This document shows positions 495-49,314 of a DNA stretch of 64,000 bases, in pieces. Under the pieces are notes generated by a model that was not told the DNA's origin, did not search any database, and saw only the letters and a list, made by a program, of their open reading frames with translations. The translations under genes were made by a program, and so were the position numbers. This DNA comes from Camelus ferus (Eukaryota), in contig NC_045706.1 in NCBI RefSeq assembly GCF_009834535.1, positions 22,010,001-22,074,000 of the forward strand, given 5' to 3'. How positions within the stretch are numbered: the first letter of the stretch is position 1; every line of letters begins with the position of its first letter.

Positions 495-973
495 GTTATG
501 GGTTGAATTATACCCCATCCCCCCCAAAAGATATGTAGAAGTCCTAACCCCTACTGTCTCGGAATGTGACCTTATTTGGAAGCGAGGTCTTTGCATATGT
601 AATCAAGTTAAAATGGGGTCAGAGTGGGCCCTAATCCAATATGACTGATAACCTCAATAAGGAGAAATTTGGTCACACAGATAGACAGGCACAGGGGGAA
701 GACAATGTGAAGACCCCCCCCAGAGAAAAGGCCATGCTAAGACAGAGAGCTGGAGTGATGCACCTACAAGCCAGGGGATGCCAAAGACTGCTGACCAGTC
801 ACCAACAGCTAGGAAGAAGCAAAGCCTCCCCACAGGTGTTAGAGGGAGCATGGTCCTGCTAACACCTCAGTTTTAAACTTCTGGCCTCCAGAATTGTGAA
901 ACAATGTATTTCTATTGTTCCAAGTCATCCAGTTAGTGGTACTTTGTTGTAGCAATCCTAGAAAACACATGCA
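495..973 (+). mobile_element. MaLR solo LTR, MLT1B/C-like
   Basis: gttatgggttgaat...gaatgtgaccttatttggaa...cctccagaattgtga...gtggtactttgtt matches recalled MLT1 consensus. Confidence 0.85.
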
Positions 974-39795: not shown

Positions 39796-42725
39796 CAACA
39801 AAGAACCAAAAACTTAATTTTTAAAATACCATTTTAAAAATCATATTTATGAAATGCTTAGTGGTAAATCTGATAAAAGAGGTGCAAGATCTATAAACAA
39901 AAACTAGAAAATGTTACTGAGTTAAATTAAAGAAAACCCAAATAAATAAAAACTAATGTGCTCATGAATCAGAAGACTCAATATTTGTAAAATAAAAATT
40001 CTCCTCAAATTGATCTATAGACTTTATATAGTCTTAATAAAAATTCCAGGACCCCTTTTTTGGAAGGCAGAAATTGACAAGTTGATTTTAAAATTCATAT
40101 AGAAATGCAAAGTACCTGAATGAACAAGACAACTTTGATAAAGAAGGACAATTCTAACAGACTTGCTCCCTGACTTGAAGACATTATAAAACTATAATAA
40201 TCAAGACATTGTGGCATTGGTTTTAAGACAATCAAACAAATGGGACAGAATAGAGTCCGGAAATAGACCTGTATGGATATGGACAACTGAATTTTGACAA
40301 AAGTACAAGGGCAATTCAATGGAGAAAGAATAGGTCTTTCCAATAAATGGTATTGGAACAATTTGGCTCCCATATGCAACAATAATGAACTTTGATGCAT
40401 ACATCATACCATAAACGAATTTAATTCAAAATAGATCATTGGTCTAAACTTTATAAAACATCTAGAAAAGAGCAGAAGAGAAAATCTTTGTGACCTTGCC
40501 CTAGGCAAAGTTGTCATAGATATGACTCCAAAAGCATGAGCCAGAAATAAACAACTGAAAAATTACACTTCATCAAAATTATGAGCTTCTCTTCACTGAA
40601 AGACACTGTTAAGAGAATTTAAAGACAAGCTATGATAAAGGAGAAAAATATCTGCAAGTCATATATCTGATAAAGGACTTTTCTCCAGAATATAGAAGGA
40701 TTCTTAACACTCAATAATAAGATAAAAACAACCAAATTTTTAAATGGGCAAAATATTTTCTCAGAGACACCAAATAAATATAAATAGCAAATCAAATAAA
40801 AATATAAATAGCAAATAAGCACATGAAAAGATGTTCAAAACATCCTTAGTCACTAAAAGAATGGAAATTAAAATCACAATGAGGTACCACGATGGTTAAC
40901 ATTATTTTTTAAAAAAACTAACTATAGCAAATAAAACTACATCAAACTAAGAAGCCTTTGTACAGCAAAACTATCAACAGAACAAAAAGGCAGCCTACTG
41001 AGTGGGAGAAGATACTCACAATGACATATCCTATAAGGAATTAATGTGCAAAACATACAAAAAACACAACTCAACATCAAAAAACCACAAATCATCTGAT
41101 GAAAAAATAGGCAGAGAACCCGATTATGCATTTCTCCAAAGAAGACATACAAGGGGCCAGGAAAAGATGCTCAGCATCACTAGTTAGAGAACTGCAAATC
41201 AAACTCACAAGAAACCACCTCTCCTGTCAGAAAGCCTGTCAGCAAAAAGACAGCAAATAACAAGCGCTGGCATGGCTGTGGAGGAGAGGGAACCTTGCAC
41301 ACTGCTGGAAGGACTGAACACTGATGCAACCACTATGAAAAACAGTATGGAGCTTCCTCAAACAACTAAGACTAGAACTGCCATATGATCCAGCTATTTC
41401 ACTTCCAGGTATTTACTCGAAGAAAACAAAGACACTAATTTGAAAAGATACATGCAGTCCAGTGTTCACTGCAGCATTATTTGCCATAGTCAAGATGTGG
41501 AAACAACCTTAGTGTGCACTGATAGATAACTGGATAATGAAGATGTGGTATATGTATGCACTGGGATATTTCTCAGCCATAAAAAAAAAATGAAATCTTG
41601 CCATTTGCAACCGTATGGATTGATCTAGAGGGGTTTATGCTAAGTGAAATAAGTCACAAAGAGACAGACAAATATCATAACTTCATTCATATATAAAATC
41701 TAAAACACAAGACAAACGAAACAAAACAAAAGCAGGTTCATAGATAATACAGAGAACAAACGAGTGGTTGCCAGAAAGGAGGAGGCTGGAGGTAGGCAAA
41801 GTAATTAAAGGGATTAAGAGGTACAAAGCTCCAGTCATGCAGTAAATAAGTCACAAGGATATGATACCCAGCATAAGGAATATGGTCAACAATATTATAA
41901 TAACTTTGTATGGTAACAGATGGTTACTCAACTTATCATGGTGATCATTTCCTAGTGTATGCAAAGTCAAACCATTGTGTAGCACACCTGGAAGTAACAT
42001 AACATTGTATGTCAACTATATTTCAGTAAAACGAATTAATTAACTAATTAATTACAAACTAACCATAACAAGCATTAATGAGGATGTGGAACAACTGTAA
42101 CTCTCATGCAATGCTGGTGGAAATCCGACCTGGCACAACCACTTTGGAAAACAATTTGGCATTTTCTCAAAAATTTGAAGCTGTATCTACCGTATAACCC
42201 AGTCATTCCACTATTAAGCATTTGTTCAAGAGAAATAAAAGCATATATCTATACAAAAACTTGTGCAGGCATGGTCATAGCAGCTTTATTTGTAATAGCC
42301 AAAACCTAGATTAATCCATCAATAGGTGACTAGATAAACCAGTTTTACTATATCCATGCAATGAAACACTGTACCTCCAAAAAGTAATAAACTATTGATA
42401 CATGCAGCAACATGGATGAATCTCAAAATATTGGAAGAGAAGAAAGCCACACAAAAACAGAGTACATTTCTTTTATATAAAAGTCTAGAGAATGCAAACT
42501 AATCTATAGTCACTGTCAGCAAACCCCTGACTGTGAATGCTGTGAAGGATGAAGAAGGTGGGAGGAAGGAATTATGAAGGAGCACAGAGGGTGATGGATA
42601 TGCTGATTTTCTTGACTCTTGTTATGAATGCATGGGTGTGTTAATGTTAAAACTTATCAAATTGGTACACTTTAATGTGAGCAGTTATGGAACACCGATT
42701 ATACCATAAATACAATAAAGTTGTT
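39796..42725 (+). mobile_element. Old L1 (L1MB/ME-like), ORF2 3' part to 3' end, split by a nested L1
   Basis: gaagactcaatattt, aaattgatctatagact, gacagaatagagtcc, caataaatggtattggaaca; resumes at 42056 and ends caataaagttg. Confidence 0.85.
40931..42055 (+). mobile_element. Younger L1 3' portion nested in the older L1
   Basis: Repeats ORF2-end motifs (ctccaaagaagacatac, ccatatgatccagcta) then a different 3'UTR; degenerate TSD aaactaactatagcaa (40915-40930) and aaactaaccataacaa (42056-42071), 14/16. Confidence 0.85.
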
Positions 42726-42927
42726 TATGACAATCTTAAGGCAACTCGTAGAGTAACCTTAGTTTTATTTTACATAATGTTTATAAGCACTTAAAAACGT
42801 TTAACTCCAAGAGAATGAATACCTTAACCCTTCAATGCACGTATCTTCAAGAGATAACTCTTCAAATGTTGCATCAGACATTTGGAAGCTATGTCAGACC
42901 TTCTCCCTAAATATGCTCTCATAACAA

Positions 42928-44185
42928 TCTAGGATTCTGTTTTGTCACGTCCGGTATGTTCACCATAAACACCTTTGGGGCAATCAATTTTGCAGTACAA
43001 CTAATTAGCCATAAAACAATTTTGCCAGAAAAGATAAAATAACTAGCGGGCAGTTTGGTTTCAACTTGTAGACAATTTAGTTTCATTTCACCGTTGACGC
43101 ACTACGTCTCCCACTTTTCCATTGTATAAATCTTAGGCCTTATAGTGGTCTACACAGTGATGAGTAGATATTGCAGTCTTTAAGAGGGGATGATGACAAC
43201 TCTCTATATAGGCTTGATAGAAAATACAGTGATAAGAAAACTTACAGGAAGTGTGAAACAAGCAGAGCCAGATTGCACACTCTGCTAGAGGATGATAAGA
43301 AAGCAGTCTGCAAACCCTTCAGTGAGCCCAGCCACTCTCCCACCCGTCAGAACCAAAAGCTGACCAACCTACAGCAAATGTAAAAGAGGCAGCTAGTAAC
43401 TCACACACAGGCTTTGAGAGCTTTAATTATCGAGTCTTGGGCTGATTTAGATACAGCAGCTTGTTCCCTCATGTCATCTTTACCAAATTTATCACACAAC
43501 ATGAGAAGCTGGAGGCAAAAGACGAATCAAGCTCCTCCTATTCCCCAAAACAGAAATGGTTACATGGTTCCTGTTGAGTTTCAGTTTCCTGAAAACGGTG
43601 AAAATGTTTTGCTACTTGATAGCGGAGAACATGATGCATACAGAATTTAGGTATTTGGTACAGAATCTGGCTTTGATGATTTGGTGCAATATAAGGACTG
43701 CGCATGTGATGAAACATTTAGATGAAGTTCAGATATGTAGTACCAGTTACACACGTTACATATATCGACAAGAATTAGCAGCGTCCCTCCTCGGCTTTAC
43801 TTCCAGGGGCAGCTGAAGAGATTTACAGCAGATTTGTCAAGATCATGAGGAATTTATGTCCAACATTAGATCCTGAATCCTTAATGATCAACTTCGAGAA
43901 AGGAAGTATCATAGCTTTCTCTAAGACATGCCCAAATACGACCATGACCATCAACCTACACACATTCGAAATATATTCAAATACTTTTTGTATTTTCATT
44001 TTTCACAATAAATTTTTTTTTACTTTGTTTTATTTTCCATGTTTCATTGTGTTCTTTCTAATGTCCCTCTTTTAACTTATTTTCATTATTTTGTCTCTTA
44101 CGGCAAAAGCTGTCTTCTGACCAATTAGTTATGCAGCTGAACCGTTCGCAGTGAAACTGCTTGTGGCAAAGATTCAATACCTAGA
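42928..44185 (+). mobile_element. Mutator-like (MULE/MuDR) DNA transposon relic, internally deleted, with decayed FLYWCH and DDE transposase
   Basis: TIRs of about 100-115 bp, core 42999-43042 versus 44086-44130 at 35/45 identity. Translations: SLRG..YRLDRK..KTYRKCE..RARLHT (FLYWCH-like); LLLDSGE..RI*VFGTE..D(C)ACDETF..YQLHTLH; ALLPG..EEIY..; LMINFEK.S..AF...PN (MULE DGTF and DFE motifs). Confidence 0.8.
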
Positions 44186-46463
44186 ACCCAACTCCATAGC
44201 CCTGTCACCGCTGCCATCAATTACTCATTTGATCAATGCTTCTTTCCACAGCAGCAGAGATGGTATCGGTATCCTTCATTCTTGCATCCCGAGGTCCTGG
44301 TATGCAGTAAGTGCTCAGTAAGTGTTTGTTGAATAGAGCCTCTTAGACCCAGTATCTAGGTACCAAAGATCAAGTTGTTGACACTTTCAATTAAATACCC
44401 TCGAAGGGAAGGGACAGGTTTGGCTCTCTCTGCTTTTCGCCATCTTCCCATTTATTTTATCCATATTCGTTTGAGAAACAAATTCTTTCAAGACTTTAAA
44501 ACATGAATCTATGTCAGACTCTGTTAAGCTCTAGTATCTGTCAGTAAGTTACTTGGGAGGAAAAAAGAGAAACTCTATGGCATGCTTTTCAGTTACTTTT
44601 AATGATTAAATTGTGGTACCTGTAATAGTGATTAAGTGGATAATATCAGATTTTACCCGATTATTAAACTGGCATTTTTAGCATCAAAAAGGGAAAGAGA
44701 CATAAGCCTAAGGCTAGACAGATTCTATCAGGACTAATGACCTACTAGTGACACTTGGAAGTTCCCTTCAGGGGCTGGAGCCTCTGGGCTAGAAGGTTCC
44801 AGAGACCATCCATGCCTGAGTTAAACACTGGAGAGAGCAGATTCCTTAGCCACCTTTCAGCATCTTATGAAAATATTCAAGTCCAATATTAGTACAGCAA
44901 TATTTGAAGAAAGAAAAGTTAATATTTCTTTTTCTTTTTTCTCCTCACTCATTCCCTAGCTGCCTATTACGAAGCTTCTAGATTACAATCCCTGGTACTT
45001 CTACCAAGTGCTTCAAATTAAAAAGTCTCCATTTAAAAAGCCTTGTTTCAATCACTTACTCAGACAGCACTGCAGGCTGCTGCCTCCGGCACTCAGAGCA
45101 GCCAAGGGAGGCACAGGGCAAAATGTCAGAAAAGCAGCTAAAGCGAAGAGCAACCAAAAAAGAAGGTCACTGTCCCCTCCATGCTGCACCTTGGTGGCGC
45201 CGCCTACCAGGGCCTCCCCTCTCCCAGTCAGCGTGTTTGAGAAACAAACATCTCCTCTGTCGGGAAAGAAATGTGCTGTGGGCACAGCCGTGGCCTCAGA
45301 TATTTTCACAGGTAATCAGACCATCCGATCAATGGTGTCCGTGTGGCTCTCTCCCCACGGTCAGGGTTATCAGGCACCCCTCCCTCCTGTGACTTCCATG
45401 CAGTCACCAAGTCGGCTTCTCTATTCAAATCACTCTATAATTTCTCCCCTTTCTTTCCAATCCCACAATTATTACCTTAATTCAGATCTTCGTTATCTCT
45501 TGTCCAGGGACAATTTAAGATCTTTGGATGTCTTAAACACAGAAAAACATTTTGGTCTCTTGACCTCTTATGCACTTAAAAATATGTAAAACCATAAAAT
45601 AAAAAGTGTTCCAGTATACTGCAATGAATAGCTTTTTTTCTAGATTTTTCTTAAAAGTTGCGATAAATTTAGGTAATTTTGCCTAGGGAAAGCTTTCTCT
45701 AGAAAGTCATTGAGTTTTGAAAGATAGAGGACTAGCTAGGTAAAGAAGGAGGAAAGGATAACCAGAAGGAAGTGCATGTGCCAGGTATTTTGATGTAAAA
45801 CAAGAAGATAAAGTTCCCTGCTGTATGACTGAACAGAGGGCATGGAGAAAGGGCTAGAAAATGAGAGCATCCAAACCATGATGGTCCATGTGCTGAGCTG
45901 ACTTTATCTTCCAAGCTGTGGGGAAGCCAATGACGAATTGTAAGAAGATATCTAACACATTCACGTAAATCAAACCTCTTTCTGTGAGGTTTCAAATGCA
46001 AAGAGTGGACCAAAATAAACGACCAGAAAACAAAGTAAAGAAAACAAATCTAGCTTAGCCAAGCAAATAGCCATTATTCTCAAAAATAAGTTTCCAGCTG
46101 AGATTTCTTTCATACTGTGCCCCAGTGTTCTCTCCATGGCCAGGAAACCATCTTTTCTCTTGGATGCTCTATGATTTCCTAACCTAACCCAGGGTCAAAG
46201 CCAAAGGCTAGTTTGAGACCTTCCTGAGCAGTCTCAGGGACTCTCACGAGGATCCGGTTTCCACCCCAGGGATAAGCCCCACCGTCACTTCCTTAACCTC
46301 CCACCCCACCCCCACAGCAGATCCTTCCTGGTGGCTGGTTCCATTTCGTTCGCCTCAGAAGCAGTCACGCTACACAGAGGAGATTCTTGCCCTCTCCTCA
46401 CACAGGGCAGTAGAGCCCCAAAGGACAAGACTTCTGTCACTTAGCCATCTGGATGCGCATTTA

Positions 46464-46836
46464 TGTTACAGGCTGAGTTGTGTCTCTCCAAATCCAAATG
46501 TTGACTCGGAACCCCCAGGACCTAAGAATGTGACTATATTTGGAAATAAGATTTTTTAAAAAGTTAAGTTAAAACGAGGTCACTTAGGATGGGCCCTAAA
46601 GCAGTGTGTTACATATAAGAAGAGGAAATTGGCACACAGAAACACAGAGGGGGGACCTTGTGAAGGGACAGAGAGAACAGCCATCTCTAAGCCCAGGAGA
46701 GAAGCCTCAAGAGAGACCAGCCCTGCTGACCCCTTGACCTCAGGCTCACACTTCTGGCACCGTGAGACCCTATGTCTCTGCTCTTTAAGCCGTCCCGTCC
46801 ACGGTGCTCTGTTGTGGCGGACCTAGCAATATCGAT
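46464..46836 (+). mobile_element. MaLR solo LTR, MLT1A-like
   Basis: tgttacaggctgagttgtgtc...gaatgtgactatatttggaaataag...gccatctctaagcccaggagaga. Confidence 0.85.
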
Positions 46837-47054
46837 GGGGAACACTTGTTTTTCTATCATAACTTCTCTTTGGAGGAGCTCTTCTTATTTCAGGACTGCA
46901 CGGGTGAGTGTCAAGAGGAGTCAAAAGTATGACGTAGGTGGCCTGTGCCTGGTTGTGTGGATGCCTGGGCTTCCAAGAAGCAGGTGCAGGTAAGTGGAGG
47001 ATCTTGCCTGCTGTGGGACAGAAGGCCCACTGAAGCCGGGGGAAGGTCAGTGAG

Positions 47055-47541
47055 TGTGTTAGTTTCCTATGACCGCTGTAACCAATTATCACAAACTCAG
47101 TAGCTTAAGACAACATGAGTTTATTATTTTATAGTTCTGGAAGTCAGAAGTCGCACCTGAGTCTCATGGGGTTAAAATTAAGGTGTCAGCAGGACTGTCT
47201 TCCTTCTGGAGGCTTTGGAGGAGAACCCACTCCCTTGTCTCTTTCAGCTTCTAGAGGCTGCCTGCATCCTTGCCCCGTGGCCCCATCCTCACAGAGCATC
47301 ATTTCAGCATCTGCTTCCCTTGTCCCATCTCCTTTCTTTTATTCTTCTGCTTCCCTCTTGTAAGAACGTGTGTGACTACACTGGGGACACCTGGCTAATA
47401 TGGGCTACTCTCCTCATCTCATGATCTTAACTTTAGCACATCTGCCAAGTCCCTCTTGCCCTTCAGGGAAAGGTATGCACAGGTCTGAGGATTCAGAGGT
47501 GGCCATCTTTCAGGGGAGGGAGCATCACTCAGTTTAAGACA
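47055..47541 (-). mobile_element. MaLR solo LTR, MLT1C/D-like
   Basis: tgtgttagtttccta...gttctggaagtcagaagtc...ggtgtcagcagg; near-TSD gtgag and gtgaa. Confidence 0.85.
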
Positions 47542-47694
47542 GTGAAGAAAACCAGAGGGAGGCACAGCCCAGAGGGACTGAAGAACAGAGAAATGTCAAA
47601 GGAGACTTGCTGGGTGAGAATGTATGGCCTCTGTCCTTGACCCCAGGAATCTTCAGCTACCACAACCAAAATCCCAAAATGGTTGTTATAGTTG

Positions 47695-48055
47695 GTTAGA
47701 ATTTCCCCAGGAACAGACACTGAGATGAGAATTAAGGGGTTTATTTGGGAGATGGTATAGGAGTAGAGAAATTACAGGCAGTAGGGGGCAGTCAATATAG
47801 AGTATGTTATAAAGCCAGCTAAGTCTCTGGGCAACTAGAGCTCAATCCCACTGGGACATTCTGGGAAAAAAAGATCACATGCTTTGGGAGTTGTCCCACA
47901 TGAGAAGCAAGAAGCAAGGGAACCAGGGTATCTGTACACCAAACTTCACTGGTCATTGGCTGAGGGCTGCTCCCACATACTAGTTCCCCGGCACTTCTGC
48001 AGAAGAGGGTAGAGGAGCCTCTAGAGGATCTGGAGAAAGCCCTCCAGCAAAGAAA
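47695..48055 (-). mobile_element. ERVL-class solo LTR (LTR33/LTR67-like)
   Basis: cagacactgagatgaga...tttatttgggag...ggtcattggctgagggctgctccc; subfamily uncertain. Confidence 0.5.
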
Positions 48056-48918
48056 GGCAAATCTTGCAATCAGAAGTCAGTGGGAGCATACCACAGTGGA
48101 AATACCAAATGGATACGAGCCGAACACCAACAGTGTCTAGTAAAATTAGGTTTCTCATGGAAATCAGTGACATGGCCGAGCTTTGCATCCTCACTGATGT
48201 GAGGCTGAAACAGCCCATAAATACGAGGTAACAGCTGACATCTGGATTGCACAGAGAATACGCATCAATGGAAAGGGATTTCTGTGCTGGTCTTATATTT
48301 GATGTCTATAAACCTGTCACTATTGCAACTCATGCTGCAGTCTCTTCCGCTGAGAAACCAGCCTTAAACTCTTTGCTAGCTGGCCCCCATTCAGGACTTC
48401 TATAGAGTCCCGTTTCCAGTATTTCCCTGGTCTGAAGCCAATTCCGCCCCCACCCCTACTCCCACCACACTTGGCTTAGACCTCAATCTGCACGGCTGCG
48501 CATCTCTCTTGCTCTTTTGAGTAGAAGAAAATAGATTGCAGAGAGTTTCCCTCCACCTACTACTTCCTCCCTTGATTAAAAAAAGAAAATTAAAAAAGAA
48601 ATTACAAAAAAAAATCCCCAACTGTTATTTTCGCCTTCCATTTCACCGAGTCCTCAGCCCTTCGCCTCCGTTCCTAGCCATAAATCAGGCATTTCTGGAG
48701 CTTCCATGTCCAAATGCACAAGGACAATATGCATGTACTTTTAAGTAAGAAGTAAATGCTCTATAATTTAATTTTCTCCTCTCACATTAAACCTGCCATG
48801 CTTCGCATAATCGGAGTGATAAATGCAGAGTCAGACTTCATCTTCCTGACATTAATACCCATCAGTACTTCAAATGCAAACAATTGTGACATTCGACTTT
48901 ATAAAAATTACCAAGTGC

Positions 48919-49314
48919 NNNNNNNNNNNNNNNNNNNNNNNNNNNNNNNNNNNNNNNNNNNNNNNNNNNNNNNNNNNNNNNNNNNNNNNNNNNNNNNNNN
49001 NNNNNNNNNNNNNNNNNNNNNNNNNNNNNNNNNNNNNNNNNNNNNNNNNNNNNNNNNNNNNNNNNNNNNNNNNNNNNNNNNNNNNNNNNNNNNNNNNNNN
49101 NNNNNNNNNNNNNNNNNNNNNNNNNNNNNNNNNNNNNNNNNNNNNNNNNNNNNNNNNNNNNNNNNNNNNNNNNNNNNNNNNNNNNNNNNNNNNNNNNNNN
49201 NNNNNNNNNNNNNNNNNNNNNNNNNNNNNNNNNNNNNNNNNNNNNNNNNNNNNNNNNNNNNNNNNNNNNNNNNNNNNNNNNNNNNNNNNNNNNNNNNNNN
49301 NNNNNNNNNNNNNN
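48919..49314. other. Assembly gap (396 N)
   Basis: Run of N read directly. Confidence 1.

Follow-up and report, generated by a model that had tools for sequence, protein, structure and literature searches.

The element and its ends

Within the 64-kb window (the whole stretch of DNA that was analyzed), positions 42933-44175 are a dead, internally deleted copy of a Mutator-type transposon, and this copy is a real genomic fossil. The unit of about 1.24 kb (approximately 1243 bp) is inserted on the + strand, and between its two long inverted arms (TIRs) lie the broken front part of a transposase gene and an AT-rich stretch (Table 1). Because public runs, which carry three organism labels and come from nine studies, contain 94-99% of the 31-mers of the stretch, the element copy is fixed in a well-sequenced animal genome. 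No further copies were found in the 64-kb window, which also contains a run of 396 N at positions 48919-49314, either masked sequence or a gap in the assembly.

Table 1. Features of the element, window pieces matched by the family profile, and candidate target-site duplication (window coordinates unless marked L001)
Feature	Coordinates	Strand	Profile positions	Remarks
Candidate left target-site duplication	42924..42932			ACAATCTAG; 6/9 match to 44176-44184
Left TIR	42933..43045	+		about 113 nt; begins GATTCTG
5' subterminal untranslated stretch	43046..43167	+		no profile match
Decayed FLYWCH zinc finger	43192..43380	+	16-76	
Pre-catalytic transposase region	43384..43647	+	82-168	
First catalytic block	43651..43791	+	170-215	CDETF and YQLHTLH; stops 43723 and 43738
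Second catalytic block	43794..43955	+	219-272	ALLPG...LMINFE; follows the frameshift; reaches the CxxH position
AT-rich 3' subterminal stretch	43956..44085	+		directly after the truncated frame (deletion junction)
Right TIR	44086..44175	-		about 90 nt; final bases AGATTC
Candidate right target-site duplication	44176..44184			AATACCTAG; 6/9 match to 42924-42932
Inner arm parts compared	42999-43043; 44086-44130; L001 ~696-753			
Stop-free piece	43168-43380	+	16-76	E 1.7e-3
Stop-free piece	43384-43647	+	82-168	E 3.7e-17
Stop-free piece	43651-43722	+	170-193	E 0.042
Stop-free piece	43779-44072	+	219-272	E 1.1e-9

The arms are degenerate inverted repeats, as a preliminary description of this DNA had proposed from its letters. 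The arm cores (42999-43043 and 44086-44130) are complementary at 35 of 45 positions, and local alignment of the arms in their extended form scores 56, compared to 22.2 ± 4.0 (maximum 37) for 300 shuffles. When the left arm is aligned with the reverse complement of the right arm, 66 of the 114 columns are identical. Arms of about 113 and 90 nt, which are kept in the second copy introduced below, are the long TIRs that characterize the Mutator/MULE superfamily. Among the three arms compared, the inner parts (around AACTAATTRG ... TTTTGC ... AAAATAA) are better conserved than the outer tips, and the inner part may be the transposase-binding section of the TIR.

The exact ends of the element are based on comparison with one other copy, carried by a 900-bp public metagenome contig (L001), of which nucleotides 1-784 align with window positions 43382-44173 at 77% identity (616/802, with 28 gap positions). 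The similarity to L001 stops at about 44173-44175, placing the right end approximately 10 nt inside the end that was first proposed, and the pairing of the arms moves the left end inward by 5 nt. The arms had originally been drawn out to tctagg and cctaga; these outermost bases are more likely to lie within a target-site duplication (TSD) than within the repeat, because the similarity to L001 stops where it does. Since the last two bases of L001 differ, the ends are precise only to a few bases.

The TSDs of Mutator/MULE elements are 8-11 bp in length and usually 9 bp. The preliminary description had recovered no 9-bp TSD, and the 9-mers flanking the ends that it chose match at only four of nine positions. 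With the ends moved inward, a candidate does appear: the 9-mers adjoining 42933 and 44175 (ACAATCTAG and AATACCTAG) match at six of nine positions, an agreement with a chance of 0.015 for random local 9-mers in a single test.

The transposase remnant

Most of the coding remnant lies in a single + strand frame (43168-43791), which is interrupted by four stop codons (43381, 43648, 43723 and 43738). At 43792-43793, two extra bases cause a frameshift, and the coding sequence resumes at 43794 in a frame that is open into the AT-rich stretch. An ATG at 43160 might have been the original start, but it lies in another frame. The short peptides quoted in the preliminary description (SLRG, YRLDRK, TYRKC, RARLHT, ACDETF, YQLHTLH, ALLPG, EEIY and LMINFE) are present where it had placed them, all of them on the + strand and colinear.

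Relatives of the remnant were retrieved with the 88-aa piece encoded by 43384-43647. A word search among 5.8 billion proteins returned only P0001, a 139-aa protein that is encoded by L001 and recorded from that single contig, with 56% identity and an E value of 3.2e-17. Its occurrence on one contig speaks against a human source. P0001 is colinear with the next window pieces as well, having ACDGT and YQFYTLH where the window has ACDET and YQLHTLH. A profile made from P0001 and the window piece was compared with 1.84 billion representatives and matched 1762 proteins at E<=1e-3, of which 277 reached E<=1e-10; many of these proteins have a length of 450-475 residues, and their match starts near residue 95. 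All 10 of the long relatives that were scanned carry both an N-terminal FLYWCH domain (PF04500) and a MULE domain (PF10551) above the gathering scores, and most relatives of the protein P0004 also have both domains.

A family profile of 464 positions, derived from 19 full-length relatives of 440-480 residues, was then compared, with filtering switched off, to every stop-free piece in the six frames of the entire window, 3703 in total. Only four pieces scored below E 1, and these are colinear on the + strand (Table 1). In a second run, the three frames of 40000-48500 were read with X at the stops; here, 43192-43788 gave one match to profile positions 16-215 (126.7 bits, E 2e-37) and 43791-43952 matched positions 218-271 (E 1.5e-7), with no other profile match in the X-read interval. 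Weak matches of single pieces at 42365-42499 and 44528-44599 (E 2-8) were gone when the frames were X-read and were set aside as chance.

The match to the 88-aa piece is partly circular, because that piece helped to retrieve the members of the profile. The matches to the FLYWCH piece and to the piece with the second catalytic Asp are independent, as both lie outside the query that retrieved the relatives. A direct Pfam search gave no match for six stop-free window pieces or for P0001, the pieces being of insufficient length and the MULE domain being divided by stop codons; it was in the relatives that the two domains were recognized, and the family assignment therefore rests on these relatives and on the custom profile. 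Nothing usable came from the ESM Atlas with the 88-aa piece, and no PDB sequence matched the FLYWCH piece. The profile of PF10551-bearing relatives nonetheless matches the window with the E values given above, and this match bears out the proposed MULE identity and the presence of a MULE DDE domain. The N-terminal FLYWCH finger found in Phantom-type MULEs, which had also been proposed, is present at 43192-43380 in a broken state.

In the alignment of 19 family sequences, the invariant or near-invariant residues include the FLYWCH ligands (C36, C44, H62 and H64), the residues D189-G-T-F, Q201, H206, D251, E253, C272 and H275, and the motif N377-N378-x-x-E381-x-x-H384. The finger of the window copy retains C36 and H64, has lost C44 in a 5-residue deletion, and carries R in place of W and P in place of H62. 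The first catalytic Asp (D189) is retained, in codon 43708-43710. The preliminary description correctly recognized LMINFE as the second catalytic block, but the Asp of that block (D251) has become Asn in the window copy (codon 43890-43892).

Recognizable similarity stops at about C272, and a His two residues beyond may be H275. The truncation had been placed just before the CxFH motif; it does fall near CxxH, but the frame ends at or just after this position (C272) and not clearly before it. Profile positions 273-464 are unmatched anywhere in the window when six-frame pieces are searched, and likewise in X-read 40000-48500. The third catalytic residue, E381 of NNxxEgwH, is therefore absent through deletion, in agreement with the original claim, and the remnant represents the front 58% of a transposase. 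The combination of D, D and E with C/DxxH is thus found in the family and not in the window copy, as would be expected for a dead non-autonomous copy. In the family, the spacing from D251 to E381 is 130, which is within the D-E spacing of 120-135 in most arthropod MULE clades (PMC13359780).

Relatives of the element and the Ricksha question

The nearest intact relatives of the window copy are crustacean transposases, with 44-46% identity. Over 257 residues, the X-joined translation (263 residues) shares 44% identity with residues 16-271 of a 467-residue protein of Macrobrachium rosenbergii. Four crustacean proteins (P0156, P0163, P0004 and P0158, collectively from Macrobrachium rosenbergii, Palaemon carinicauda, Caligus rogercresseyi and Lepeophtheirus salmonis) show 39-46% identity to this translation over about 257-270 residues. 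The crustacean transposases have the same domain order and motifs as the fossil; their ORFs of 405-470 residues are intact, whereas the fossil is broken and stops near residue 272. The named crustacean relatives belong to Caligus, Lepeophtheirus, Macrobrachium and Palaemon, and those outside the crustaceans to Octopus sinensis, Photinus pyralis and Caenorhabditis auriculariae. A quick maximum-likelihood tree was computed from the 63 relatives that align over at least 225 residues, with shorter ones such as P0001 left out, and it places the window copy in a 10-row clade (SH-aLRT 99) whose named rows are all crustacean.

Phantom-type MULEs were reportedly described by Marquez and Pritham in 2010. 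According to a later survey, Phantom-type MULEs of animals encode FLYWCH and, after it, a MULE DDE domain within a single ORF, with TIRs that are variable and often long, TSDs of 8-10 bp, and hosts that include crustaceans (PMC6446971). The fossil resembles them in its order of FLYWCH and MULE DDE and in its long TIRs, and it groups with crustacean transposases.

Short fragments that look like fossils as well (P0001, P0003, the P0016 group, P0077 and others) share 56-66% identity with the window copy and 48-59% with the crustacean proteins. Based on these three-way identities, the undecayed ancestor would have been about 63% identical to the crustacean transposases. Such a pattern is compatible with horizontal transfer, and also with poor sampling of vertebrate transposon proteins. 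The closest intact FLYWCH-MULE transposases (P0004, P0156, P0158, P0159, P0163 and P0167) come from decapods, copepods (two of them fish-parasitic sea lice) and an octopus, and this patchy spread suggests horizontal transfer among aquatic animals. In a separate observation, P0016 and P0182-P0191 represent a 97-residue fossil of the family with 11 near-identical variants, each found on up to 52 contigs (Logan, ENA); because it recurs across dozens of contigs, this group presumably belongs to one locus in a host that is sequenced very often, which may be human, and its contigs were left out of the DNA comparison.

The catalogued MULEs of eutherian mammals deserve particular attention here. Ricksha and RICKSHA_0 are attributed, reportedly, to Kapitonov and Jurka in 1998-99, and are said to be labeled DNA/MULE-MuDR in Repbase and Dfam. 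The chances are evenly divided that the present element is a copy of this eutherian MuDR group, a question that bears on its novelty and not on its mechanism. The age of the copies is relevant in this regard. The window copy and L001, at 77% identity with few indels, differ by only about 23%, which corresponds to approximately 0.28 substitutions per site, and each copy would accordingly have an age of about 0.14 substitutions per site (about 14%) if both descend from one master. The four stops in about 260 codons and the 22% difference between the arm cores are consistent with a decay of about 0.14 per copy. A figure near 14% per copy is less decay than expected for eutherian-wide repeats, which counts against the Ricksha assignment.

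RICKSHA, RICKSHA_0 and Ricksha_a are the MuDR families of humans and eutherians in Repbase (PMC5753468). RICKSHA_0 has been described as short and non-autonomous, its inverted terminal repeats measuring 79 bp and its internal edge 855 bp (PMC1431705). Its size and arm length are of the same order as those of the present unit. The host group, the superfamily label, the short non-autonomous unit and the long inverted terminal repeats are all points of likeness. The difference, compared by description only, is that the present unit measures about 1243 bp, has arms of 90-113 nt and is colinear with L001, whereas about 1 kb is implied for RICKSHA_0.

The answer affects what the copy means. Dupeyron et al. 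(2019) found no MULE transposases in vertebrate entries, asked for a re-evaluation of the eutherian Ricksha entries, and listed the supposed absence of MULEs from vertebrates among the open questions (PMC6446971). In the window copy, a FLYWCH-MULE transposase remnant that is unambiguous by its statistics is accompanied by both ends of the element; the preliminary description takes the animal genome in question for eutherian and the locus for a SORCS3 intron. The deletion derivative also occurs in L001 as a second, independent insertion. If the element belongs to Ricksha, an old classification is merely confirmed; if it does not, it would represent a second MULE invasion of a mammal, a younger one whose closest intact relatives are found in crustaceans. 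A more specific proposal, which seems unlikely at present, is that an uncatalogued, lineage-restricted MULE distinct from Ricksha was transferred horizontally into mammals and amplified mainly as the 1.24-kb derivative, the donor pool being the FLYWCH-MULEs that are now seen in crustaceans and cephalopods. If that were true, an alignable mammalian MULE transposase would answer the question of vertebrate MULEs (PMC6446971).

The deletion junction and subsequent decay

A single copy whose frame stops abruptly at profile position ~272 would fit either of two histories, namely the transposition of a shortened unit or the truncation in place of a full-length autonomous copy by a later local deletion. 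The evidence that separates them comes from L001, in a DNA comparison of two copies among which there is no full-length copy with both ends. The alignment extends from the truncated frame across the junction into the AT-rich stretch and then continues through the right arm, where 68 of 92 positions are identical in the two copies; the right arm of L001 also matches the left arm of the window in inverted orientation (45/58). Past the right arm, the flanks are unrelated, with a score of 15 compared to 16 ± 2 for random window segments. Because L001 shares the junction and the right arm but lies next to unrelated sequence, the deletion is older than either insertion, and the common junction in an independently inserted copy implies that the deletion derivative itself transposed. 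A local deletion in the window copy is therefore very improbable, and the preliminary description was right to call the element a non-autonomous deletion derivative, as the truncated frame and the common junction both indicate. Least probable of all is that a domesticated host gene of MULE origin, of the ZSWIM1/3 or FLYWCH1 type, left a pseudogene here: mammals do have such genes, and one relative gives a sub-threshold match to the ZSWIM1-3 RNaseH-like domain, but the unit is bounded by inverted arms, L001 stops at the corresponding arm, the best matches are invertebrate FLYWCH+MULE transposases with the same N-to-C order, and the unit bears no signature of poly(A) or of intron loss.

The window copy is thus very probably a fossil non-autonomous MULE, of the type with a FLYWCH-plus-MULE transposase, that was mobilized as a deletion derivative. 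Its proposed history begins with a compact autonomous progenitor of about 2 kb, which would have encoded a transposase of about 465 residues between TIRs of about 100 nt. An internal deletion removed the 3' 40% of the gene (from profile position ~273 on, including the NNxxEgwH glutamate), leaving a shortened unit of about 1.24 kb that retained both ends. This unit could then have been moved by a cut-and-paste reaction, with transposase supplied in trans by full-length copies, and would have inserted here on the + strand, probably with a 9-bp duplication. Neutral decay has followed, introducing the four stops and the one frameshift, converting the second catalytic Asp to Asn and breaking the zinc finger.

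The decay of the two copies can be compared at several codons. The stops at 43723 and 43738 are sense codons (Cys and His) in L001 and codon 43648 is absent there, and the second catalytic Asp is His in L001 and Asn in the window copy. Since the stops and the second-Asp codon differ, the window copy and L001 decayed independently. The element is now without activity. Whether or not it belongs to Ricksha, it is dead, and nothing suggests a role in the host gene; as a non-autonomous FLYWCH-MULE fossil, it is a kind of object that is already known. One block of 34 nt is identical in the two copies (window 43856-43889 and L001 467-500) and spans the codons that lead up to the second catalytic site; an identical run of this length has a chance of about 0.1 in a background of 77% identity and is probably meaningless.
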